A stretch of 64,000 bases of DNA from Trichosphaerium sp. ATCC 40318 (GCA_038496445.1 JALMLS010000385.1:294813-358812), one strand, 5' to 3'; counted from the stretch's first letter, positions 1,806 to 19,358 are shown. A program made the numbers and translations. Notes: generated from the sequence alone by a model not told the origin.

Positions 1806-2717
1806 ATGGGTTCTACGATATCAAACACAGTTACAAACGTTATTAGCTTGTTAGCTAAAAAAAAGCTGTTAGACCTTCCAACAGAGATACTAGCGCATTT
1901 GCTCAAGTTTATAGATCGTGCTGATCGATTTAGTGTTTCTCAAAGCTGTAGACGGTTATCAGACATCATACGTTACCATGTTGGATACAATTACATTGCC
2001 ATTGACTCGACATCATCTTGTTCTCGGCTACAGGGAAGTCCCCTTCTCAAAAACACAAGAATATCACTAGCAGGGTTCAAACAGGCAAGAAATGATGATC
2101 TCAGATATCTTTCTGGTGTTCATGAGCTATTTCTTTATCGGAACGAGTATATCACAGATTTAACATGTATACAAGGTGTTCGTTATTTGTTACTGTTTGA
2201 TTGCCCGAATATCAGTGACAACGGTATAGTAGCAGTTGCTAAACATCTCAAGGAATTGTATATGAGCGGCGCGCCTAAAGTGACATCTATAGGTATGAAA
2301 GCACTCTCTGGAGTACCAAATATCCATCTGCCAAGCTCTAAAGTGACAGATGATGTGTTGGTAGAGTTATCTGGAGCACACACAATCAACTTAGGTCTTT
2401 GTAAACTCATAACAGATGAAGGTATTTCTGCCTTGGCTGGTGTACATACAATAGACTTGACTTTGACAAGAGTGACAGATAAAGGAGTCCATGCTTTAGC
2501 TGTTGCTGGCGTGCACAACATCAACCTTTCTTATTGTACGAGAATCACTGTTGCTTGTATGAAAAGTCTTGCTAATGCTCACACTATTGATCTATCGTAT
2601 ACACATGCAACAGATGACTGGCTTGCTCCTCTTTCTAACATCAAGGTGCTAAAACTACTGGGTTGCGAAAACATCTCAAGGAAAGTAATTATCAAAGGAG
2701 TAAAGATCAGTTACTAG
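1806..2717 (+). CDS. F-box/leucine-rich repeat protein, intronless
   Basis: LLDLPTEILAHLLKFI...VSQSCRRL F-box, then about 22-aa cysteine-containing LRRs (ITDEGISALAGVHTIDL). Confidence 0.85.
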   Translation: MGSTISNTVTNVISLLAKKKLLDLPTEILAHLLKFIDRADRFSVSQSCRRLSDIIRYHVGYNYIAIDSTSSCSRLQGSPLLKNTRISLAGFKQARNDDLRYLSGVHELFLYRNEYITDLTCIQGVRYLLLFDCPNISDNGIVAVAKHLKELYMSGAPKVTSIGMKALSGVPNIHLPSSKVTDDVLVELSGAHTINLGLCKLITDEGISALAGVHTIDLTLTRVTDKGVHALAVAGVHNINLSYCTRITVACMKSLANAHTIDLSYTHATDDWLAPLSNIKVLKLLGCENISRKVIIKGVKISY

Positions 2718-2775
2718 TTGTAGCTAATAACTTAGTAAACATTATAAGTTAGCCTTTCTTTTTTAGAAGTTACAA

Positions 2776-3422
2776 ATGGAAAGCAACGTGCCTAACACGC
2801 ATCCCTTTGATCTCAGTTCACTCCCTGTTGAAGCAATCGTTCATATCCTTAAATGTGGGACGTACGCCCTTCGTTTAGGGCAGACTTGCCTTTATTGAGT
2901 GATGCCGTAATCATGTCGGCTATGATAATATCCAACTTCAAGCGAATCTATGATAAAACTGCTGTCAGGCCTTTACTTCAGAATACACGCATTTCGCTTC
3001 GAAATATTACACTGGTGGCATTACATTGACTTGAGATAAACTGATGTTGGTGATGAGGGGCTTAAAGCACTTTCTGGCGTTCACACCATCTGTTTGAGGC
3101 AATGTAGAGGAATAACAGATGAAGGTATCAAGGCTTTGGCTGGTGTACATGCTATTACCGAAACAATCTCTGGTGTAACAGATGAAGGGTAAAAGGCGCT
3201 ATCAGGAGTACACTGTAGAGCTACCTATTGTGACTCGATCACTGATAAAGGCATCAAAGCACTGGTTGGTGCACATAGTATTAATTTGGCAGCTGCTCTG
3301 GTATAACAGATGACGGTTTATATGCTTTAGTTGGACTACGTTGCCTTAGAATACATGATTGTGTTAACGTGTCCTGGAAATGCAGAGCAACGTTAGGCGA
3401 AAGAGGTGTGAAAGAATTCTAA
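2776..3422 (+). pseudogene. Degenerate tandem copy of the F-box/LRR gene
   Basis: LSSLPVEAIVHILK, PLLQNTRISL and ITDEGIKALAGVHAI motifs broken by frameshifts and in-frame stops. Confidence 0.75.
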
Positions 3423-3713
3423 ATAGATATTTTCAATAAAAGTTACTTTACAATTAAACATTTGTGCATGTAGTAGAAAATAGACGTTTGTGCAAAGCGA
3501 CAACCTTACACAACAACTGTTATGATACTTTTGGAAAGGTTGTATGGGCTTGGATTATACCGACAAAGAAATGACAATCAAACGTTTCAATGAAGTGTTT
3601 TTTTTTAAATTATTTGTTTTGTGCACAAGAAACGACATACGTCGCTCCTATTTTAAAGTTTGGTGTCTTTTTTTTGTTTGTGTTGTTTGATGAGTAACTC
3701 CTTTAATAAGATG

Positions 3714-6700
3714 TTAATAGAAGTGCTCAGGATTCGACTTGGATGCATCACCAGTTGTATCAGTATACATATCCTACAAAAAAAAATTACTAATTACAAT
3801 CATGTTGAATGCACGTGATACAGTTCTATTCGCTCAAATCCTACTTATTTATACGCCCACAGAAATACGGTACGTTTATGTCGCTTATAAAAACAGTATT
3901 TTGAGGGGCGGAGGGCAAAAAAAAGGAAGGATTTGCATGAATAGAAGTGAAGTTTAAGCAGCTTTGTTTTCGAATGTAGTATCGTACCATGTCATCAGTA
4001 TCAACATCATCGCTATCTACTATATCTACAGATGATTCCTCTATAGTCTTCTGAGTAGAAGGAGGAGCAGGAGGTACATAAGATAGTGAATCAGGTGGTT
4101 CAGCTCTAAGCGGCTGAAGTGGATCATCTTGAGGTTTGCCATACTTTTCCATTTCAGTGTAACGAACACTATCAAGTACAAGTCAGAAGAAATCAAAATC
4201 AAATAGCACAATTTAAGGTAGAAAATATTGAGTAAAAACACCTTGCGACTAAAGCGCATATTTGCACAATAGGCACAAGAAACACTCATAACTTGTTTCC
4301 CTGTTCAGTAAAATAATAAACCGATCATATAGTTACATGCTACCAAGTATAATTTACGAAAATGGTAGCGTGTAACTGCACAGATATACAATATTAAACT
4401 CAATGAACTTATAGTCCAAAACAGAAGTCACAAAATGAGATAAAATAAAAAACTTCAAACATTAAAAACGCACTAAAGATCGTCATCGTTCTCGACACGG
4501 TGATATGCCTACATAAAATATTATTGCTTTAATTACAAGCTATACTTACGCTATTATAGAATTTTCCTTTAGAATTCTTGGCACATGCACAATACAAGAA
4601 AATACTCAATAAAATGAGAATTACTATTGCTATGCTAATAATCATAACAAGTCCTAATGTACTGAACATAGGCGGTTTACTAGGCTTTACTAATGATAAA
4701 GGTGTTAGTATACGTATTTACCATTACTAAGTATGTCATTCAAGTTAAATCACGTGTTGTGTAACTGAAAAAAACCAGAAAAATTGAGCGAGGTTTTGAC
4801 ATGCATGTTTTAACTTGAACGACACTCAATAACCAACTTAAACATTCTTTACCTTCATGGTTCTTATTTTCTACACTGACAGCTTGTACACCCTTCTTTA
4901 GAAGGTCCTCTAATAGTAAAGAAATAAGAAAAAAATAAGAAAATCCTTGTAAGTCCCAAAATGTGCTTACCTTTTCTTGACTCATAGTTTGATACAGCAG
5001 CAGTTGCTGCATTATCTGCTGTTCTACCTGCTGGTAGTAAATTATCTACAAATCCTATGACTATTACAGCTTCAACAGCACGCTTGCTTGTAGAACAATG
5101 CGTTAAGATAAAAGCTGCTGCTGCATCTTTAGGATCAATCAACGATAGTACAAGTGCCTCAGCACCAATAAAGCACTCGCTCATCGATACAGACACAAGA
5201 AACCTCTGATTTATCTGGAAGAAAACTAGGGTTAATTCGAAGTGTTTCAATATTAACTCACCAAACCAGAAGCTATTGGTTGCTTTGTTGCAGTTGGAGG
5301 CACGGATGTTGGTGTTTCAGTTGTTGGAGATATGGTAGTTGGAGGTTTCGTTGGAACCTCTGTTGTTGGAGCATCAGTTGTAGGAGCCTCAGTGGTTGGC
5401 GCTTCACTTGTAGGAGCATCAGTTGTTGGTGCATCTGTGGTCGGCGCGTCCGTTGTTGGAGCATCTGTTGTAGGCGTATCGGTGGTAGGAGATTTAGTTG
5501 GAACCTCTGTTGTTGGAGCATCAGTTGTAGGAGCTCCAGTAGTTGGTGGTTTAGTTGAAGGAGCATCTGTGGTTGGAGAATCAGTCTACAGTACGATTAG
5601 ATAATAAATGATAACATTATGATGTACCACAGTAGCTGGAGCAACAGTAGTATTTGCAGGCGTTGGAGCAACAGGAGCAATAGTAGTATTTGCAGGCGTT
5701 GGCTCAGCAGTTACATTTGTGGGTGTTGGCGCATCAGTAACGTTTGGGTTAGTTGGAATCTTAGATTCAACTATTTACGATTAGAAATGTTGGAAAAGGT
5801 GTGAACATTGATAGACGTACTACAAGGATATGTAAAGCCGTTGACAGTAACATTAGATTCAGGAAATGTTGGTACAGTATTGTTTCCATCAAGTATTGAT
5901 ACACCCGAACAGTTTGTAAGGAAGGACAACTGTTCATTAGCTTGCTCTGACAAAAAAGAGTAAGGTTCATTTCATAGAACAAACAATGCAATTGGTACCA
6001 TTAAGAAGAGAAATGAGGTCCGGACACACATCTGCGAAGTGGTCACATGCGCTTTTGCACATTGGTTCACCAACCAAAACTAGGTAAAAAAGTGAGAACA
6101 TGCACCAATATTTATCTAATTACCTTGTGGATTGTCAAGACATTTCGGACTGAGGGTTGAGCAAACCAACTCGGTGAACACTTCAAGACAACCTGGTGAT
6201 TGTGATGCAACCTGGGTCGCCACAGGGAGTAGGTCCGTTAATGACGTTGAATAGACATCATCCTAAACTACTCGTGAGTATTGATATTCAAACGTAGTGG
6301 ATATAATGACATACAAGAGTATTGTTACCCAAAGTAAAGACACCATTTGAGAAATTACCAACAAAAGAAGAACAAAAGTCCTTTGCTACTTGAGGAGCGT
6401 CCTCGAAACTGCGACATTCACCAAAGGCTTCCTTGGGATTACTCATGGGAGTTGGTTCGCTAGTGACATTTGCTGGAGCTGGAGCAACAGTGGTGTTCGC
6501 TTGCGCTGGAGCGGATGGAGCGATAGTAGTGTTTGCTTGTACTGGAGCAGAAGGTGCGATAGTAGTATTTGCTTGTACTGGAGCGGATGGAGCAATAGTA
6601 GTGTTTGCTTGTACTGGAGCAGAAGGAGCAATAGTAGTATTTGCTTGTACTGGAGCAGATGGAGCAATAGTAGTGTTCGCTTGTACTGGAGCAGATGGAG

Positions 6701-7433
6701 CAATAGTAGTGTTTGACACTGTTGGTGTATCAGTATCGTTAGATTCAACGTCACGCTTGTACCCATAGTCACCATTAAAACCTAAGTTAACAATCATTTA
6801 AAAACCGGTTTTGTGCCTTTATGAACTTTTTCACGCACCACTAAATACCTGAATAGGTAACGGTTTCGAGTAGGAATTCGATATTCGTACCGTGATACTA
6901 TTCAAAGTACTAGGTCTAGAGTAGACAAGGTGTAACATCCTGAACAAATATTAGAGTTTTCACGTGATGTATTCGACGGTACCATGATGTAAGAGGTTGT
7001 ACAGTAGGTGCAGGGTGTGTGAGAGGTTCAACACATAAAGTTGAACTTGCGCAATCGCTTCCAAGCACAATATTGTCAGCAGCTGTATCTGTGCGCTGTT
7101 GCTGGCGTGTGGTACTAATTTGTAGGTTCAGTTCCTCCACTGCGCTCTCTAATGAGGAAATATCAACCTCCTTTTTATTTTGGTTAGACACAAATAGTAT
7201 GCTTTTAAAGTTCTAGCGACATGCAAAATCGCACCCATAAAATAGATTCACTGGCGGGAAGAGTTATAAACGCAGTTTCGAGAAAGTTTGTGTTGCGCGT
7301 GAGAGATGATGCCGTAGTTGACGCCAAGATTACAATGGCGATTATCTGATGCGGTTTAGTAAACAAGCGATGTTATTGGTAAAAAGGACAAAAGAATTGA
7401 AATACGAACCGCCAATTGTAATAGACCTGACAT
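3714..7433 (-). CDS. Multi-exon type I membrane glycoprotein: signal peptide, P/T-rich stalks, Frizzled-like cysteine-rich domain, TM helix, acidic tail
   Basis: MSGLLQLA|IIAIVILASTTASS start; Cys pattern C...FC...PGCLEVFTELVCSTLSPKC...PMCKSACDHFADVC; TM LGLVMIISIAIVILILLSIFLYC near 4590-4660. Joining of the last exons (4152-3988, 3773-3714) is uncertain. Confidence 0.6.
5330..5580 (-). repeat. 15-nt coding tandem repeat (PTTDA/PTTEV)
   Basis: Periodic gttggagcatcagtt units. Confidence 0.9.
6463..6720 (-). repeat. 36-nt coding tandem repeat (ANTTIAPSAPVQ, about 6 copies), each with an N-glycosylation sequon
   Basis: Visible in ORF 6288-6797. Confidence 0.95.
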
Positions 7434-8180: not shown

Positions 8181-11100
8181 ATGCGTGCTTATAAAAAGCA
8201 GGATTCAGACAGCAAAAGACGCAAGCAAAAATCTGCTTTTGATTTTATTACCCACTTCCTGAGTACTGTACCATCAAAGAAACTAAGCCGTAAGGAGAAT
8301 CGCGCTTTGAGAAGGGTACGGATTTTCTAGCCATTCATCTTCCTAAATAGTAATACCCTTGTTCCCTTAGCTATTGGATACAATGAACAGGGATAGATTA
8401 TCATTTTCGACTAGAAATGTACAATTTCCCTTGTTGTACCCAGGCGAAGAAATATCTAATGAACGTCAAGGCACGTGATACGAAACAATAAAGCAAAAAA
8501 AAAAATCAGAACATGTGAAGATATGTTTTTCTCCTGTCTTGCTTACTTATCTATAGACATTGAATTTAAGCTTAAAGATAATTGGATACGTGGTAGAGTA
8601 TCGAGTACAAACTTCAGGTTTATATTTGTGGCATCGCAGGGCGTTTATTCTTTGACAGAACCAAACACCTCAAAGTTTGTGTTTATCGTACGAATTTTTT
8701 TTTCAACTGACATCTTTGACTTTTGTGTCTTATGAATTTTTGTATAGCGCTCTTTCTTTTATCAAGATATACACAGAGTTACTATGCCTTCAACAACTGA
8801 ACTGTTTATTATAACTAAATCATTTACAACTATTTATATTCGCACATCAAAGCCAGTTATAAGACTTCTTGAAGGTATTGAAATCAAATTTGCCAAGTAC
8901 TTACACTATATTAGTCGACTTAAGAACACGTCTTGAAGATCAGGGCCAAGGGCATGTTACTCGCCTAATGCAGTTAAAATTGTACGAAACTACATTATTT
9001 TTGTTCAAAATATTGATAAGTTTTGTTTTAGATGTAAAAGACTTTCTCCACCGATAAGTTCGCCTTATGTTCCAGCTAAGGAGTTTAAGAGAATGCATAT
9101 AAAATTTGAAGTTGGTCAATGGCGTATTATAAATAGAGCGTACAACTTGTCAAGATTCATTGGTGATGTATGTCACTTCTTCTATGCTTGTTCCTCTTGC
9201 TTATTATTTTGTAGAATTGTATGGTTTTGCCTTTTGTCACACCAGATACGATGATACTAGAAACGGGTAAACACCGAAAGTATGTGATACTTCTTACCTT
9301 TTATTCTTTAACCACTTCCATCTTTAATCTTCTACTAGACCTCAAGGTATAGTACCATACCTCACATGGGCGTCGGTACAATTTTTTTTTATTTCCATGG
9401 AACCACAATCAATATTTACACTTTGTTAAAACTAGCCATCTGGTGGCTGCTTATTCCGAGATGCATCTCCGAGAGCAATTCGTATAGGCGAGCGTGTTTC
9501 TCTAAATAACAAAACAATGTATAAACTACTATCTAATTGCAACGCCAGTAACCTTGCAAAACCACCAGCAATGTAAGCATAGCCAAATCACTATTGCCTT
9601 AGTTGACCTTGCTGTAGGAGAGGTCAACATTTTATATTCTCAGTTGATGACGGTGATACACAGCTAATTAACCAAGCGTACAACAGATACAATCCGTTCA
9701 TGGAGACAACAAACACTTTAGCACCAGACTGGACGCCTAAAGTTCTACAGAATACGTGGTCAATCACTGATACTACATATCAATATAACCGTTTGTTAAA
9801 TGTATCAAAGAGCTCGCACAGTAGAAATGCGCTTCGGAAAGGCATAATGAGATTAAGTGGTAATGACTTCTAAAAAATCAGTAACAAGTTTTGATTTTTT
9901 TAACTTTTCATAGATACTCGTATTAGGACTCTCTTAAACATATCGATTGAGATAGCAACTTGCCTTAGTTCTCGCGCAAATGCAATAGTTCAAGCTCCAG
10001 ATGGAGAAGTAACAGCACAGTTAGTACGTAGCATTAGCTGTCAAAAAAAACCTCTCGGAATATTTGTTTGTACTTTTTTTAATTACATATTGTTTAGGTT
10101 TGCTTGGCACAGATTCTTATTGATCCTTATTTCCGTACATACCGTGGTATCCTTGTTTTGATAGATAAAGAATGGAATAGTCTATGCCTTTCTGCAAGAG
10201 CTCTTCCACGTAATTATGAAGTAGCTTTCTTGCAGTTTGTTGAAAGCATATGGTACTGCAATATACCTCTTTTCTCTATCTAATACTCATGGAATATTAT
10301 AAGGCAAATACAACGTCATTTTCCAGATGCTTTTGAGTATAATGAACAGTTCCTTATTGAATTAATGCGTGCTGTAAATTCTGGATTATTCAACGAACTT
10401 ATTTTTATTCCACATGTACACCCACTATTTTTATTTGCCTTTTTTTCTCCATCACGTGTTAGCAACGAATTAATGTCTTTAGAGACAACGAAAGAATATG
10501 AAGCTACATACGCACTCTATGTCTGTAGTGAACTACTTTTTTATGTCTTCTGTACTCCTTAGATGTACAAACCCACTCTATGCTGGAATGGATGCGTATC
10601 CTGATATCATAAAAGATATTAAACCATTACAACGTGTGGCTTTATGGGAGAGATACTATTTAGGACCTGACCCAAATACACCGTACGCAATTTTATCTAC
10701 TATATCTCCACAATGTGGGTAGTTGGCTGCTTGAGTATTACTAAGTGAGTGTAGGTTGCTATCACCTAGTCGTTTGAAGCATTATAAGACCAGTAAAGGA
10801 GCTGGTTCACCTTATCTAAGAGGAAGAGTGATGCCATTCAGCTCATCACATTTTGTAAATTTATCTTACTTGTCACTGCAAGATATAACAAATGAACAGT
10901 TGGTTTGTGTCAATGAGACTCAGCCATTCGAATACACAAAGTATGATTATTTTTTGACATCTTCAAAAACCCTTTACTTAGTACTAACAATTTCGTTGTT
11001 TTAGGGAGTTGTATGCTCACAATAATCTATTGAGTGCTACAAAGGCAAAGAAAGACCGCGTAAGAAAACGATGGCCAGCTCTGTTTTCAAAACTAACTTC

Positions 11101-14100
11101 GCTGCATGTTCTTGTGTTGGCAGATAATTTGATGGACTTGTTTCCAGTTCAACTATGCAATTTTGCAAATTTGCACTTTCTTGACTTGTCATGGAACCGT
11201 TTGACAGATATGTGTCAAGCTTTGGTTAATTTAACTTCTTTGAAGACGCTATTGCTTCGAGGAAACAAACTTCCGCGCATCACGTTCCAACGTAAGTTTT
11301 TTTTAATTGTACGATTCCCTCATTGTTGGATTAACATCGTTTAGTTGGGCTTATGACACAATTAACACGATTGGATCTTGCTGAAAATAAGTTGGTTGAG
11401 CTCATCACATCTATTGGAGAGCTATCTCGCTTAGAAGTACGCCGTTTTTACCCAAAACATTTTATGCAAATAACTAACCTTCTTTAGATTTTAGACTTGT
11501 CCAATAATGACTTGAAACAATTGCCACCAACAATGGGGCGATTAACAAGTTTAACAACATTGTACCTTGGCGGTAAGTATTTGATCTCGGTAACAGTTTC
11601 TTATATTAGATGAATAGGTAATCCTTGGGAACGATCTTTAAGGCCACTGTTGGATAAGCATAGATATGTGAATGATTCAAGGTACGAACCAAAACAGATT
11701 GTACAGAACTCTGCTAATGATAGCAATAGATCATTGAGAGAATTGTTGGATTACCTTCTTATGCACATGGAAGGCATGGAGACGTACAAGAAGCACAAGA
11801 TTATGGTTATCGGAGCACGTGAGTAAACCAGTCGGAGGTAAACAACTGTTGGCTGACATCTTTTTTCATAGCTCGTGTTGGTAAGAGTAGTCTTCTTTCT
11901 GCACTTGCCATGCGAAAGAAACATGGTAGAGCAATGACGCCACATGCTACCGTTGGCGTCAGTGTGGGCACTTTAACTATTTCGTACGACGCTGCATACT
12001 TTTGTTTTATACTGATAACGCTTGGAAATAGACGCCAAGGAAAGAATGAAATGAAACGTGGTAAAGACAAGCATGATTTGCAATTTAACACTTGGGATTT
12101 TGGAGGTACTTTTTTTTATCCCCAGAATACTTTTCTTGACAAAAATTCCCTCGCCTTTCTATTATCCATTCTCGCCACTTTGTATCTAATAAGCCGCAAA
12201 AGGCCAAGAAATTACCCATAATATCCACGAGCTTTTCTTAACAAGCCGTACGATATATTTAGTAGTATGGGACCTTACAAACAGTCAATCGACGGAGCAA
12301 CTAAATTCCTGGCTACATGCCATCGAAAGCAAAGCGCCAAAATCTCCAATACTGGTACGAGAAAAAAGCAGAAACCGCCGCGATTTTTTGAAAAACTTTT
12401 CTCTCTTACTCGCATTAGTTGGTAGCTACACATGTCGATGCGTTCAAAGCTAGACCAATATTTGCAGAAGATCATGTAGAAGCAGTAAAAGCACGATTTC
12501 GCGGTCGATTCCCTAGGATTCGTCGTGTTATCGTTGTTAGTTCAGTAACTGGTGCGTTTTAGACTTTTTTAAGCTCAAAGCCACAAATTTTGGCTTTTTT
12601 CCCATAGAGCTGAGTCAGGGCGTGCGAGAATCGACTCGTATAACGCCTGTTATGTCAATGGGACAACAAAACGCTGGAATACAGGTCGCCAAAGTTTTTT
12701 TGGATGAACCATCTTTCCACGCGTCTACGAGTGAAAAAACCGCTGTGTGACCTTCGTGCAAACCCACAGTGCACTCGTAGACGAAACATTTTTGTCAAAA
12801 AATCAAAGTACCTGACACTTACCGATTGTAGGCACTGGCATTGATGAACTTCGTTCTGCCATTGTAGCGGTAGCATCAAGACAGACTCTCATATTCCAGA
12901 AGAGCTTTGGTGTCCTTGAAAAAGTATGTCGTCTCAAAATTTTGAAAACATGAAGAATTTACGCTAACGCACTTTTATTAGGCGCTCACAACTGAGATGA
13001 AGCGATTTAAGCGGCCTACAGCTATTCTTTGGGATGAGTACAAATCTGTCGCGGCATCTTGTAAAATAGTCAAACAGTAAGGATTTTTTGAGTGTTAACA
13101 AGTATTTACATCAATTTAGCGAAGAACTGATACAGGGAGCCGAATTTTTACACACTGTTGGTTCCATTGTATATTTTGGTGATAAGAAGTCTGTTCTAGG
13201 CGACTTGATCATTCTAGGTACGTTTTAAACGAAATGACAGACTTTTGTTTTTTGAAGTAACTTAACAATAATTGACACTCACTTAGATCCAAATTGGTTG
13301 ACATCTGCATTCGATGCTCTGTTAAAAGCAGCCCAGAAAAGTGGTGGTATATTTAACATCAAGTCTCTTCGTGCTTGCTGGAAGAGCACGAGTTACCCAA
13401 CAGAAGTTCACGCTCCACTAGCTGAGCTAATGAGAAAGTTTGAGTATGCTTATAACCTGAGTTACAAAGAGTTTGGGCGTCACTTTAAACCCTCCGATCC
13501 TGCTCTTCTTGCTAGTAAAACACTATCTCCAAGAGCCATGAATGATTTAGCACAGTTTATGGTTCCTAGCTTGCTAGAAGAAAAAAACGAAAAGAAGTTT
13601 ACAAAGTTTTGGAATCCAAACTTTGATGATTTTATTCGTTGTCAGTTTAGCTTAGTTTATAGGCTTGGTAACCTACCACATGTACGTAGTATAATTACAA
13701 GAAAGGCTTATATTAACAACGTTTATTAGGGTTTGTTTGGTCGTGCAATGCTACGCATCTTTGAGATTGCAGAAACTGTTCTGAGTTATTGGCGAGATAT
13801 CGTTATCTTCGAGTTTAAAGCTTGTCGTGTGCTAATGCAGGTCTTTGCACAATACGAAGAGATTCGTATATCTGTTCGTGGGCATCGCCCAAAGGAGGTA
13901 ATACCATTATTTCTGAGATTTGTGTTCGAAACTATTTCTCGCGTAGTTGGGTATTCTGACGTTTTTCCCAGGTTGGCCAAGAGCTAATGCAACTCATGCA
14001 AAACTTGCTGAACATGTGGTACCGTATACCATACAAGATCTTCCTCCCTTGCTCTCGTTGTCTACAAGATCGACACCCAGAACCTTGTCTATTCTCGTTA

Positions 14101-17100
14101 GCGAATATTGAAGCTCTATCAGCGAAGGGAGACTTCCTAGCTAAGTGCTACAATAAATCTCGGAATGGATTTGTTCGTATTGATCTTATGCTTCCTTTCA
14201 ACATGCCAGACCTTACGAAGTTCATACCTGCAGCTGATATCACTCAAGTACGCTTTTTTTTCTTCTTTTTTTTTTTTGAATGAAAAAACGAGGAGGCTCA
14301 GGCGCTTGCTGTTGACTGCGTACGAGCGTACGCTAAGTCCTATATGAGTAACTGCTTGCAGCCAACCTCGAACAGCAAAAAGTCGAGGTAGGTGGAGGTT
14401 ATGTTGATTTAAAGCGACTATCCTTCAATCCACTTTGAAACATTTAAAGTTTTTTGGAAACTACAAAATTTCCTTCATGAAACTTACTCTCTATTGAAGG
14501 TTAGAGTGCTTCAGGATACAAAGTACACGTCTGTGTGGGCTGGTATGTGGTTAGATCAAGAAGTAGCTGTAAAAAGCTTAAAAGAGGCTTCTGATTCTGA
14601 ATCTGTTTGTGGGAATACGAGACCTTCTACTGATTATGAAGATGCTTTAAGGCAACTACGTAATGAAGTGTACTTAATAGCGTACGTATTTTTTACTTCT
14701 TGCAATTACAACGTTAGTAAGAGAGCTGATTTCTTTACCTTCTAGTCAATTACAACATCCCTGTATTGTTGCGTTGCTTGGGTGTTTGGCAGACCCGTTT
14801 GGTATAGTACTACAGTACGTCAAACGTGGCGAGCTGAGGCAGTACCTTAACAAGCATCCATCCATTTCATGGCCTCTAAGGCTCAGAATTGCTGGAGATA
14901 TTGCTCGTGCTATGGACTTTTTACATTCTTGTGTTCCTCAATTAGTTCATCGTGATCTCAAGAGTCCAAACGTATTGGTGCGTACTATCTTTCGATTTTT
15001 TGGTTTTTGAGGTTTTTTTTTAACACTTTCTGTAGCTTATGTCGCTTGATGTGACTCAGAGTGTCGTAGCTCAGGTTGCAGACTTTGGAGAGTCAGCTAG
15101 GTTGAGCTTAGGCTCTTTCCGTAGTGATCCAAGGTCGACAGCTAATGTTCAAAACCCAAAATGGCTGGTACGTTTTTTTGTTGAACTTTTTTGTTTGGAA
15201 GAATTTTTTTCACCCTCTTTTTTGTCCTATGATTATCTTTTCGAGGCATTTGTCCCAGACCTGCTCAAAAAGTTGTGTTTTACAACGAATAACGGGCTAA
15301 ATTATGCAGATTTCGTCAATCTGAGGCAATCAACAAAACAAAACAACAACTGTTTAGATTTTTTTGTTTTACAGAATCTAATGTTTTATTCAAGGCACCT
15401 GAGGTAATGCAAGGAGAAACATACTCTGATAAAGTTGATGTTTTCAGTTATGCAGTAATATTGTGGGAGCTTATAACTAGTACTATGCCATGGTCTAATA
15501 TTAGTTACTTGCACAAAGTCGAACAAAAAATTTGTCAAGGTACGGTTTTAACTTCAAAACGGACTTGTCAGTTGAGTTTTTTTGTAATCGTTTTGTGTCT
15601 AATATATTTTCTTAGGTGAGCGTCTAGCTATACCAGATGATACACCACAGCTGTACAGAGATTTAATGACACTTTGTTGGCATCATGAACCAGATAAACG
15701 ACCTGCATTTAGTGGTATGATTTTTTTCTTTTTTTTTTTTTTCCTTCTTTTTTTGATACTGACTGTTTATAGCTATCCTCGATCTATTACTTGCAATTGT
15801 GGCTGTAGAAGCACCAAAGCTAAACATGTTCTTCGATACTCAAAACCCAGAACGCTTCAAATCCGCTCGAAAAAGCGACAACGTCGCTGTTTTGGAGCAC
15901 ATCAAAACAGTTAATATGGACGAACTCAAGATCGCTTTGCCTCCTGGTATACCAGAGGAAGACCAAGGGCGTGGTATTCGTGCTATGGCTGTACAACGCA
16001 ACACAGTTTGGCTTGGCACTGATCAAGGAACACTTATTGTTCTCGATTCTACTGTACGTTCTCAAGTTTTTTGTGCCTTTTTCTTGTTCTGCAATGAACT
16101 TTTTTTCTACCGCTTCCCCTTTTGTCCTATGATTATCTTTTCGAGGCATTTGTCCCAGACCTGCTCAAAAAGTTGTGTTTTACAACGAATAACGGGCTAA
16201 ATTATGCAGATTTCGTCAATCTGAGGCAATCAAAATAACAAAAAAAAGCGATTTTTTTATTGATTATATTTTTGTTGTTTACTGACTTGTTCTTGATAAG
16301 AATGGAGAGATGCTATGTTCTCATGGTACTGCTGCTTCTAGTAGAATAACAACAGTATTGGTTGTCGGTCTTAAAGTGTGGACAGGATCATCTGATGGCT
16401 ATATACGCACATGGACTCTAGAAGTTGTACGTTGTTTGAAAGTTTTGTTAATTTTTTTTATGGACGATTTCTCATGTTACCACTTAGGACCTCGGTGTTA
16501 ACCATCTAGGATCTTCAAAACTTACAAAACAGGGGTTCTTAAATGTATCTAAGAAAGTACAGATGCGTAAAAAGCATTGGTATAGGCGGTGGGTTGTTTT
16601 AAACAACCGCAATCTATATGTTTATCGTACTCAAAAGGTAAGCATCTTTTTTTTTTTTTGAAAGTTTTTGTTTTCCTCTTTGGTTCTTACTTTGTTATTG
16701 TAGGATCAATACCCTCTTCTTGCCTTCAGTCTTAATAACGTTAAAGTATTACATGAGGTGAAGACTCCTGATAATGAGTATGGTTTTGGCATACTAGACC
16801 AGAAGAGAGCTTCTATCCTTTTTTCAACAGAGGTTCGTGTTAACATTCTTTTTCAATAATTTCCTTGTGTTATGGGTTACCACACTGAGTGTTCATTGTG
16901 GCTTCCCTTGCGCAACTGTTAAAAAGACTTTCTTTAAAAATACAATGATGTTTGTGGAAGAGCCGTCAGAGTTTATGTGCTGATATTTTTCCAAAATCGA
17001 AGAATCTAATAAAAATCGCTGAAGTATTTTTTTCTTTCTTTCAAAACCCTGTCTGTCTTGTGATGACTTCATGTGCTTGAAATCTCACATTAAGTTACTA

Positions 17101-18487
17101 GGATAAAATAGAACGTAATGATTGGATGTGTACAATACGAACAGTTGTACAGTCATACGAGTATCAGCAGGGTCTGGTAAGTCCTTTTTTTTTTCTGCTC
17201 GAAATAGGTTAACTTTTTTTCTCTGACTTTTTTTCAAGGATCAAGCTACTTCAAAGACATCTCCAACACTTAAACGTGAAACTTCATTACCCGTTAAATA
17301 CAGTGGACCAACATCACCCACCAAATCAGCTGGTATACTTCGGTCAAGGAGTCAAAGTTATTCGCCTACAAAAAACCAAAAAAGGTCGAATAATGTATTC
17401 GATATCAACCTAGACCAAGTTCCTGCTAAACCCAGATCTGGTAGTACAGTAACAACTGATCAAGAAAGAGCGCGTATTTTAAAATCAAGTGCCAGAGATC
17501 GTGAGGTACAGTGATACGAGCCAAAAATCTTTTTTTTTTTTGACTTTTCCATTTTTTTTTTGTTGAATATGTGATGACTCATAAAACTGACACGTCGTTG
17601 TAATTCCCCGTGATTAAGAAACGAGCGCTTTAACTCTGATGTATTCAGCAAAAAAATTTGAAGTTTTTTTGACACTGTTTGAAAGAAATTTGAGCTTTTT
17701 TCTAATTGCTTCTTTCAGACTATTCTTGTGGCTCATGATCATGCAAAAGCAAAGTCTCCTGTACATTGTATGGCTGTGGGTGACCGTACTGTATACATAG
17801 GAGGTGATAAAGCATGTATATTTGTATGGAACATAAAGGTTCGTAAAACAAACTTTTTTTTTTTCATCTTCTTTCTTCATTCGGCTTGTTGCTTACTGGC
17901 GTTTTTATTAGACTTTTTCGTTAGAGCATACCATAAAGGTAGAAGAAAGTGTATCTAACGAGATGTGTGTGTCATGTATACTTCATGCGAATGGTATTTT
18001 ATGGGCGGCTATTGGGTCCATTCTGTTTCGAATAGATACAAGTGACATGGCTGTCACTCGCCTTTTCTGCCATAAGGCAGATATAAAATCTATTGTAAAG
18101 CATACAGGGAAGATATATACATGTGACAAAGAGGATATCCTAGCCTGTTGGACAGTGGTACGTCAGAATCTCTTTCGTTGTAAAATGCTTTTTCTGCTCT
18201 TTTTTTTTCTTCTTTTCTTCTTGTTTCTGACTTCTCTCTTGTAGGATGGTGCTCTTATATCCAAGGATATGTTGGATATATCTTCTAATACCTCAGCAAT
18301 GGTCACTATAGGTGATATGCTGTGCGTGTCTTCGGGCACTAAACTTTGTCTGTTTGATACTGTTAGAATGATAAAAGTCGGTGTTTATGATACTGAACTT
18401 GATACTTCTTTGACTGCCTTGACTTTAGCACAAGATAGTGTTATATGGGCAGGTACTAAAGGAATGAAAGTAACAGTATGGACATGA
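8181..18487 (+). CDS. Pats1-like Roco protein: GRAM/myotubularin-like, LRR, Roc GTPase, COR, kinase, WD40 with inserted PH domain; many exons
   Basis: Myotubularin motifs LAQILIDPYFRTYRG..KEW and FPDAFEYNEQFL; LRRs about 11010-11600; Roc KIMVIGAPRVGKSS and WDFGGQE; kinase VAVK, HRDLKSPN, DFG, APE; PH KQGFL...WYRRWVVL at 16526-16640; stop TGA 18485-18487. Confidence 0.9.
12600..12791 (+). ncRNA. Intronic three-hairpin box H/ACA snoRNA, U19/SNORA74/snR191-like
   Basis: In intron 12552-12831. Hairpin CCCAT..ATGGG, H box ACAACA 12663-12668, last hairpin CGTCTACGAGTG..CACTCGTAGACG, ACA 12786-12788. Pocket GAGTCA/GTTAT brackets LSU helix 69 GUAAC-UA-UGACUC, 14 nt from the H box. Confidence 0.85.
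14289..14445 (+). ncRNA. Intronic box H/ACA snoRNA, snR10/SNORA21-like
   Basis: In intron 14248-14499. CGAGG..CCTCG hairpin, H box ACAGCA 14372-14377, ACA 14440-14442. Second pocket GTAGGTG/CAATCC brackets LSU A-loop GGAUUG-UU-CACC, 14 nt from ACA. Confidence 0.85.
15223..15328 (+). ncRNA. Intronic box C/D snoRNA, U15/snR13-like guide (copy 1)
   Basis: In intron 15168-15394. C box ATGATTA 15229-15235, D box CTGA 15321-15324, short terminal stem. Guide CGAGGCATTTG is complementary to conserved LSU CAAAUGCCUCG. Confidence 0.85.
16123..16228 (+). ncRNA. Intronic box C/D snoRNA, U15/snR13-like guide (copy 2, identical)
   Basis: In intron 16054-16300; 16120-16233 is identical to 15220-15333. Confidence 0.85.
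16936..17031 (+). ncRNA. Intronic box C/D snoRNA, U49/SNORD49-like
   Basis: Stem AAAAATAC/GTATTTTT, C box ATGATGT 16945-16951, guide GGAAGAGCCG (complement of LSU CGGCUCUUCC), D' CAGA, C' GTGCTGA, D CTGA 17019-17022. Confidence 0.88.
17558..17653 (+). ncRNA. Intronic box C/D snoRNA, U36/snR47-like
   Basis: In intron 17506-17718. Stem TTGTTGAATAT/GTATTCAGCAA, C GTGATGA 17571-17577, C' GTGATTA, guide ACGAGCGCTTTAACT against SSU AGUUAAA..GCUCGU, D CTGA 17636-17639. The D+5 position falls on the A equivalent to yeast Am619. Confidence 0.88.
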
Positions 18488-18748: not shown

Positions 18749-19358
18749 TATGGCTTGACGACAACAGAAATTGGCTATTTATGGTAACCCTCCACATTGA
18801 GTATCCAAACGAAGAACAGTTGGCTATGCTTTCTGGAAGTCCTTTACTAAAGAATACACATATTATTTTAAACGATGTTGTAGATAGTCAAGTTCTCCAA
18901 CTTGTACGTGTACACGCTATCAACTTATCGTATTGTGGAGCAATAACAATGAGATCTATCATAGCTTTAGCAGGTGTGCATACAATTTCGTTGTCAGGTA
19001 CAAATGTGACAGACAAAGGTTTGAAGGCTTTGGCTGGAGTACACACTATAGATTTGCTTTGTTGCAATTTTATTACAGATGAGGGTATCAAGACTTTGGC
19101 TGGTGTACACAATTGATTTAAGAAGTTCACCAGTAGCAGATGAAGGGTTAAAAGTCTTGGCAGGAGTACACACTGTAGAGTAGCTTTCAACTTAACTTAG
19201 GTTGGCGTGTACTAAATAAATTTACGTGGATGCGATAGAATAACAGATGAAGTTTGAAGTCTTTGATAGGTGCTCATTACATAAATGTGATAGATTGTTT
19301 CCGTATGACAAGTGTTGGTATAGAGGCGCATCCTAAATCAGTAGTAGTAGTGAGATAA
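18749..19358 (+). pseudogene. Third, dispersed and broken copy of the LRR family at 1806-3422
   Basis: SGSPLLKNTHI versus QGSPLLKNTRI; LAGVHTIDL repeats; frameshifts and stops after about 19110. Confidence 0.75.

Follow-up and report, generated by a model that had tools for sequence, protein, structure and literature searches.

In a 64-kb window (i.e., the whole stretch of 64,000 nucleotides [nt] analyzed here) from the amoeba Trichosphaerium sp. ATCC 40318 (GCA_038496445.1 JALMLS010000385.1:294813-358812), the 3' half of an expressed coding gene for a Roco (Pats1-like) kinase very probably hosts six intronic small nucleolar RNAs (snoRNAs; sno1 to sno6), i.e., two H/ACA and four C/D guides, two of which are identical. 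Each of the six oversized introns of this gene (I1 to I6) holds one snoRNA-shaped element that is bounded by boxes and closed by a stem (H/ACA in I1 and I2; C/D in I3 to I6). Splicing was observed for two of these six long introns, and discrete RNAs were found from two or three more.

The host gene was traced on the plus strand, which carries all features described below unless stated otherwise, from position 9600 to position 18487 (stop codon, 18485-18487), with an exon model built by eye from the sequence and a three-frame map. Between positions 12552 and 17718, its 3' half contains 18 introns, all of which are bounded by GT..AG and keep the reading frame at every junction. Twelve are ordinary (43 to 76 nt), while six are long (213 to 280 nt). 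The long introns are I1 (12552-12831; 280 nt; six stop codons on read-through), I2 (14248-14499; 252 nt; phase 0; three stop codons), I3 (15168-15394; 227 nt), I4 (16054-16300; 247 nt), I5 (16833-17101; 269 nt; phase 0; nine stop codons), and I6 (17506-17718; 213 nt; phase 0; six stop codons). Since read-through of each gives one to nine stop codons, the long introns are not exons. The ordinary introns of the genome measure approximately 60 nt, and those carrying the snoRNAs are 4-fold longer. From the end of the RNA to the 3' splice site there are 40 and 54 nt for the two H/ACA RNAs and 68, 74, 77, and 78 nt for the four C/D RNAs, the latter being a distance that Hirose and Steitz reportedly found in 2001 to favor splicing-coupled assembly in vertebrates.

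Pfam searches conducted exon by exon (the E values are therefore those of single-exon searches) revealed the domain series myotubularin-like, LRR, Roc, COR-A, COR-B, protein kinase, PH, and beta-propeller. The upstream exons matched Myotub-related (3.6e-06), LRR_8 (2e-07), and Roc (6.6e-08), and the stretch with the long introns and beyond matched COR-A (3.1e-09), COR-B (2.6e-04), PK_Tyr_Ser-Thr (3.7e-14)/Pkinase, and PH; the match to the LRRK2 beta-propeller was weak. A Roc GTPase directly before COR, together with LRR and a kinase, identifies the gene as a member of the Roco family. When the COR-A exon was compared with 1.8 billion representatives, three weak matches were obtained, the best of which was a Mastigamoeba kinase (29% identity).

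Three public runs from one study (X1, X2, and X3), stored as contigs, were compared with the window over positions 12400 to 17900. Since their exons differ from those of the window by approximately 1%, the runs represent a related strain. Contigs from X1 and X2 skip 10 introns exactly at the modeled boundaries, including the long introns I3 (joint 15167>15395 in an X1 contig) and I4 (joint 16053>16301 in X1). These contigs therefore hold RNA, and the gene model is right where it can be tested. Among the 23 exonic differences between the strains, 21 are synonymous and 2 are nonsynonymous (synonymous divergence, roughly 4%), and the host is therefore a coding gene under purifying selection. The covered snoRNA bodies exhibited no differences in approximately 407 nt, while neutral divergence of 4% would predict approximately 16; an intron flank in I5 (16865-16935) carries four substitutions and an indel. 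In X3, sno5 and sno6 were recovered as adapter-bounded contigs that extend from 3 to 4 nt before the C box to 1 to 2 nt after the D box (depth, 430 to 4600), i.e., as discrete small RNAs with ends just outside the boxes; the identical pair sno3/sno4 (sno3/4) was recovered, in X2, as a fragment only. The Roco/Pats1-type host and the six oversized introns among short typical ones, both of which had been proposed in an earlier note made from the sequence alone, are thus borne out, and its proposal that the long introns carry snoRNAs now has RNA evidence for four or five of the six.

Targets were called on heterologous rRNA, i.e., three metagenome rRNA gene (rDNA) loci that were picked by a conserved pattern at the 5' end of the large-subunit rRNA (LSU) and that contain complete small-subunit rRNA (SSU), 5.8S, and LSU sequences delimited by Rfam. 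Rfam detected no rRNA in the 64-kb window, and a search of viral contigs for the eukaryotic LSU pattern yielded two rRNA fragments only. Yeast numbering is based on the modification table of PMC8307265 plus offsets within the references. Unconstrained antisense searches were uninformative (shuffled snoRNAs reached a median best score of 11), and hits were retained if they were correctly spaced from a box and lay at known sites. For the C/D RNAs, candidate antisense elements of at least 10 nt adjoin a D or D' box in sno3/4 (11 bp), sno5 (10 bp), and sno6 (13 of 15 positions). The target assignments are credible because each of the five coincides with a known conserved site and two of them reproduce guides of Dictyostelium.

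The box C/D RNA sno5 (I5; 16942-17024; 83 nt) comprises a C box (AUGAUGU; 16945-16951), a guide (16956-16966), a D' box (CAGA; 16967-16970), a C' box (UGCUGA; 16978-16983), and a D box (CUGA; 17019-17022), and it is closed by an external stem of 8 bp (16936-16943/17024-17031). In X3, it starts at 16942/16943 directly after the 5' adapter, and its final CUGAAG abuts the 3' adapter (depth, approximately 430 to 1570). The guide GGAAGAGCCGU is followed by the D' box, and GGAAGAGCCG pairs with LSU CGGCUCUUCC over 10 bp. The predicted target is the last cytidine of LSU CGGC (followed by UCUUCC), a cytidine of the peptidyl transferase center (PTC) corresponding to yeast C2879. This cytidine is located 42 nt 5' of the 2'-O-methylated uridine (Um) of the A-loop in the references, Dictyostelium, and human. 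On the basis of this distance, the site corresponds to the 2'-O-methylated cytidine (Cm) Cm3212 of Dictyostelium (Um3254 minus 42) and to human Cm4426 by the older count (Um4468 minus 42; now numbered Cm4456), which is guided by SNORD49. Dictyostelium 26S-Cm3212 is listed without orthologous sites in Table 1 of PMC8817022, and a supplement figure of that study labels the site C3213.

Two further segments of I5 were considered as extra RNAs and rejected. The first (16860-16918) folds into a hairpin (z score, approximately -2.7) with no matching C/D or H/ACA boxes and approximately neutral strain divergence, and its 3' arm GGCUUCCCUU is complementary to conserved LSU AAGGGAAGUC in all three references; because four positions and an indel differ between the strains, the hairpin is probably not a seventh RNA. 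The second (17047-17066) contains a perfect C-box-like GUGAUGA at 17060, with no D box before the splice site. This GUGAUGA is preceded by CCUGUCUGUCUUG, which exhibits G-U-rich complementarity to LSU CGUCGUGAGACAGGU, and the region may be what is left of an earlier snoRNA.

The box C/D RNA sno6 (I6; 17568-17640; approximately 73 nt) carries a C box (GUGAUGA; 17571-17577), a C'-like element (UGAUUA; 17611-17616), a D guide (17621-17635), and a D box (CUGA; 17636-17639), and it is flanked by an external stem of 16 bp (17555-17570/17641-17656). The X3 contigs span 17572-17640 at a depth of 2485 to 4600, with the 5' adapter 4 nt before UGAUGA. The D guide forms 13 Watson-Crick pairs over 15 positions with SSU AGUUA followed by AAAAGCUCGU, with the target A (the last nucleotide of AGUUA) at the fifth position, and 2 of 300 shuffled guides performed equally well. 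The predicted site would lie in the 18S segment AGUUAAAGCGCUCGU of this amoeba and fits yeast SSU A619 (snR47), human A668 (U36), and Dictyostelium 17S-A612 (CD25). A placement of the D guide on LSU domain II (AGUUAAGGCGC) as the snR61/SNORD38 site was rejected: the flanking-uridine check did not fit, and the CD25 duplex points to 18S. The related strain lacks the 16-bp external stem: its sequence just outside the C and D boxes is fully diverged, while the RNA body is identical.

The box C/D RNA sno3 (I3; 15222-15329; approximately 108 nt) is closed by a terminal stem of 5 bp (15222-15226/15325-15329) and contains a C box (AUGAUUA; 15229-15235), a 5' guide (15242-15252), and a D box (CUGA; 15321-15324), with two alternatives for the D' box (CCCA, 15254-15257; CAGA, 15256-15259). 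An identical copy, sno4, is located in I4 (16122-16229). The shared cassette (15221-15334 and 16121-16234) comprises 114 nt at 100% identity between diverged flanks, and no third copy occurs in the 64-kb window. The presence of identical cassettes in two introns indicates recent duplication or gene conversion. Run X2 contains an adapter-flanked RNA fragment of 90 nt (16136-16225) that fits both copies. The 5' guide forms 11 Watson-Crick pairs with LSU CAAAUGCCUCG in all references and in 12 further loci. This segment corresponds to yeast C2278-G2288, which covers the snR13/U15 adenosines (the A2279-2281 cluster), i.e., the A-triplet just 3' of helix 69. Dictyostelium methylates the corresponding A2547 (yeast Am2281 and human Am3764, where Am is 2'-O-methylated adenosine), for which the study concerned found no guide (PMC8817022). 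For the D guide, SSU AUUGACGGAA (10 bp) and LSU UUGGCGAAAUC were rejected as weak candidates, neither of which is a known site; Dictyostelium Am1133 sits 9 nt from the SSU candidate. Both cassettes are followed by A-rich runs and then by GAUUUUUUU, and the I3 and I4 5' flanks resemble each other more closely than shuffled sequences do (z score, 5.9), in a T-rich and mostly low-complexity stretch.

The two H/ACA candidates exhibit the architecture hairpin-ANANNA-hairpin-ACA with both boxes, as read from sequence and fold, and sno1 contains an extra middle hairpin. In sno1 (I1; 12600-12791; approximately 190 nt), the 5' hairpin (12600-12663) is followed by the H box (ACAACA; 12663-12668), the middle hairpin (12672-12721), the 3' hairpin (12722-12782), and ACA (12786-12788). 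Its minimum free energy (MFE) is -66 kcal/mol (z score, -4.56), and none of 200 dinucleotide shuffles was as good. An X1 contig (12418-12773) covers it at a depth of 45 (a contig-wide mean) versus 4 to 5 for exons (i.e., approximately 10-fold), with no differences in the body. In sno2 (I2; 14289-14445; 157 nt), the 5' hairpin (14289-14370), H box (ACAGCA; 14372-14377), 3' hairpin (14383-14438), and ACA (14440-14442) fold with an MFE of -55 kcal/mol (z score, -3.73; 1 of 200 dinucleotide shuffles was as good). The 5' pocket of sno1 (GAGUCA, 12612-12617; GUUAU, 12649-12653) can form 6 plus 5 bp with LSU GUAAC-UA-UGACUC, with a spacing of 14 nt to the H box, and the predicted site fits yeast Psi2258 (Psi, pseudouridine) in LSU helix 69, i.e., the snR191 site. 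The 3' pocket of sno2 (GGUG, 14391-14394; CAAUCCA, 14426-14432) can form 4 plus 7 bp, all of which are Watson-Crick pairs, with LSU UGGAUUG-UU-CACC in all three references, at 14 nt from ACA; the predicted site fits yeast Psi2923 in the A-loop, i.e., the snR10 site. Both bipartite pockets thus place a uridine at the spacing to the H or ACA box (14 to 16 nt) expected of this class. Pocket scores this good occur one to three times per rDNA unit; what lends the two assignments weight is that each uridine is a known conserved Psi site.

Rfam detected none of the six elements in the window at the gathering score, and the only match at an E value of 10 or less was plasmodium_snoR28 (23.3 bits versus a gathering score of 63). 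The families SNORD15, SNORD36, SNORD49, SNORA21, and SNORA74, for which the earlier note had suggested a search, gave no match at that threshold. The equivalents guessed there largely hold by predicted target, i.e., the helix 69, A-loop (snR10/SNORA21), U15/snR13, SNORD49, and U36 sites, and the count of five guides out of six addressing LSU domains IV to V stands if the duplicate sno3/4 is counted twice. As judged by these predictions, the six RNAs are functional equivalents by target and not demonstrable members of Rfam families. A strict C/D scan of both strands of the window returned only sno5, sno6, and one false hit, while shuffled windows gave approximately 1.2 hits, all of them short-stemmed. 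The false hit, a C/D-like pair on the minus strand (25246-25165; 5-bp stem), was dismissed as a chance occurrence, its C box being in an exon and the element spanning an exon-intron border, and it served as a control.

Besides the lack of Rfam matches, several points weigh against six functional guides. The run data consist of contigs from a related strain that are labeled RNA only by guess, and the status of X3 as a small-RNA library rests on its adapters, which we take to be the 5' and 3' small-RNA adapters of Illumina. The target statements concern conserved sites on rRNA other than this amoeba's own, and single box-anchored duplexes of 10 to 11 bp are matched by 10 to 15% of shuffled guides. 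The C box of sno3/4 (AUGAUUA) is noncanonical (the same variant is listed for Dictyostelium CD37), and its target depends on the D' register (A2279 with CAGA; A2281 with CCCA) and is thus ambiguous. Two central positions of the sno6 guide are mismatched with heterologous 18S; these positions vary among the references, and the amoeba's own 18S may therefore fit fully. The competing 11-bp match of this guide in LSU domain II does not coincide with any known site and constitutes a weaker alternative. On the reference rRNA, no convincing target was found for the D guide of sno3/4 or the D' guide of sno6, no convincing conserved target for the 3' hairpin of sno1 or the 5' hairpin of sno2, and no conserved target for the D guide of sno5. 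The 4 nt directly before the sno5 D box (17015-17018) are AUCG here and CUG in the related strain, and this difference fits the absence of a target for that guide.

Such observations leave some room for an alternative in which only part of the set works, while sno2, one copy of sno3/4, or single guide halves are decaying or redundant pseudogenes that still enlarge their introns. This is possible, although we consider it the less probable account. It would accommodate the guide halves without a target, the strain difference beside the sno5 D box, the fact that reads do not distinguish sno3 from sno4, and the lack of coverage of sno2 and I2 in runs X1 to X3. However, H/ACA RNAs of approximately 157 nt are expected to escape small-RNA libraries, the sno2 fold is well above those of shuffled sequences, and in three of three references its 3' pocket can form 11 Watson-Crick pairs around the A-loop Psi site while keeping the canonical spacing of 14 nt. 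Moreover, the complete identity of sno3 and sno4 over 114 nt between diverged flanks speaks against decay and points to selection, gene conversion, or a recent duplication.

If the six elements are functional snoRNAs, RNA polymerase II would transcribe the Roco host gene, the core snoRNP (small nucleolar ribonucleoprotein) proteins would bind their C/D or H/ACA motifs, either in the pre-mRNA or in the excised lariat, and each snoRNA intron would be spliced out and then debranched. Exonucleases would trim the intron back to the protein-protected snoRNA. The general pathway for intronic snoRNAs has been reviewed (PMC11028025). The RNAs would then guide pseudouridylation of LSU helix 69 (sno1) and the A-loop (sno2) and 2'-O-methylation of the A-triplet 3' of helix 69 (sno3/4), the PTC cytidine (sno5), and the 18S adenosine (sno6). 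We infer this processing pathway, the modifications, and the functions of sno2 and the orphan guide halves. The function of the host protein is most likely irrelevant to the snoRNAs, with the gene supplying transcription and splicing.

A functional coupling, as suggested in the earlier note, in which expression and splicing of the Roco kinase would tune guides for the functional core of the ribosome, is very unlikely. The location of six guides in a single gene, all within its 3' half and most for helix 69, the PTC, and the A-loop, might suggest such coupling, but this target bias is expected, given that rRNA modifications cluster at the functional core in all eukaryotes (PMC8307265). Moreover, the locations of intronic snoRNAs are evolutionarily unstable and broad expression of the host is the main requirement (PMC3511168), and in Dictyostelium the counterpart guides lie in an intron of DDB_G0283293 (CD38) and in an intergenic region (CD25). 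A coupling of Roco signaling to ribosome biogenesis is thus speculation. Least credible of all is the alternative that mobile or introner-like insertions or splicing-regulatory structures enlarged the introns and that the box motifs arose by chance: the 114-nt cassette shared by two introns, the similarity of the T-rich I3 and I4 5' flanks, and the lack of Rfam matches at the gathering score would be compatible with it, but it is largely refuted by the run contigs, in which adapter-bounded small RNAs have their two termini at the C and D boxes, and it is opposed by the guides common to experimentally supported Dictyostelium snoRNAs, the absence of further cassette copies in the window, and the conservation of the RNA bodies but not of their flanks.

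Outside the host gene, repeats of approximately 72 nt containing GCTGGAGTACACAC occur just past its stop codon (18880-19180) and look like an LRR coding array of the next gene. Long arrays of imperfect 21- to 24-nt repeats (similar to GTTGGAGCATCAGTTGTAGGAGC) at 5257-5600 and 6440-6720 are probably coding repeats of a neighboring gene on the minus strand.

A literature search turned up no paper linking Roco genes to snoRNA hosting. The statement that Roco is an undescribed snoRNA host may be literally true, although this is a weak kind of novelty. Hoeppner and Poole reported that the intronic sites of even the oldest snoRNAs are unstable across eukaryotes, which they termed "constrained drift" (PMC3511168). 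All Dictyostelium C/D snoRNAs except CD38 are intergenic, including CD25. A tentative extension of our results, which we would hold to be somewhat improbable, is that a wholesale transfer of snoRNA genes into introns took place in this amoebozoan lineage but not in Dictyostelium, with arbitrary genes of broad expression as hosts and despite a usual intron length of only approximately 60 nt. If so, the C/D spacing of 68 to 78 nt, as in vertebrates, would suggest that splicing-coupled snoRNP assembly is older than animals, and the identical I3 and I4 cassettes would show the movement of a snoRNA from intron to intron while it is still under way. Independently of this extension, the present analysis adds experimentally supported snoRNAs for a barely studied amoebozoan and suggests that Amoebozoa can keep a large share of their snoRNA genes in introns, whereas those of Dictyostelium follow an intergenic pattern. 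The sno3/4 pair is a candidate U15/snR13-type guide for the methylation left without a guide in Dictyostelium (Am2547), and the Dictyostelium site Cm3212 with its guide CD38, listed as species-specific in PMC8817022, is by its 42-nt distance from the A-loop Um the human SNORD49 target site. In genomes with tiny introns, an intron of four times the usual length may serve as a practical marker of a hidden RNA gene.

Comparison with known systems places the individual RNAs beside familiar guides. The A-loop uridine fitted by the 3' pocket of sno2, at 14 nt from ACA, is that of snR10/SNORA21 (Psi2923/Psi4500), and SNORA21 guides human A-loop U4500 (PMC12288042); in snR10, as in sno2, the 3' hairpin alone has an rRNA modification target. 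Similarly, the 5' pocket of sno1 fits the uridine addressed by snR191 (helix 69 Psi2258/2260), with 14 nt separating it from the H box. In contrast to snR10, SNORA21, and snR191, sno1 and sno2 exhibit no homology detectable by Rfam, and sno1 has a third internal hairpin and an orphan 3' pocket. The 5' guide of sno3/4 (CGAGGCAUUUG) pairs with the same C2278-G2288 segment as snR13/SNORD15 (U15; yeast 25S Am2280/2281 and human Am3764), but it precedes a degenerate D' box and not the D box, in an RNA of approximately 108 nt with an internal hairpin, the C box AUGAUUA, and no Rfam match. The closest likeness is that between sno5 and D. discoideum CD38 (26S-Cm3212; PMC8817022), whose guide (AAAGAAGAGCCGU and then the D' box) has the same sequence and register; the CD38 guide AGAAGAGCCGU is followed by AUUA, while GGAAGAGCCGU of sno5 is followed by the degenerate D' box CAGA. 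Both RNAs are intronic, CD38 being the only intronic C/D snoRNA of Dictyostelium, whereas its host (DDB_G0283293) is differently named and its 3' guide is different or absent. Plasmodium snoR28 (RF01604) has its guide in common with sno5, although its Rfam model scores sno5 far below the gathering score. For sno6, the D guide AACGAGCGCUUUAACU followed by CUGA compares with AACGAGCUUUUUAAUA followed by CUGA in CD25, with the target A at the fifth position in both; sno6 lacks the second guide of CD25 (for the A-loop Um), Rfam SNORD36 does not match sno6, and the U36/snR47/CD25 site itself varies among eukaryotes.

At the level of the gene, intronic snoRNA hosting is a well-known arrangement; the host gene is unusual and the lineage is little studied, and no new mechanism is shown. 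As in the multi-snoRNA hosts of animals and plants, one snoRNA per intron, a mixture of C/D and H/ACA RNAs, and C/D RNAs approximately 70 to 80 nt before the 3' splice site are found here, but the host is a Roco signaling kinase and not a gene for translation or ribosome biogenesis.

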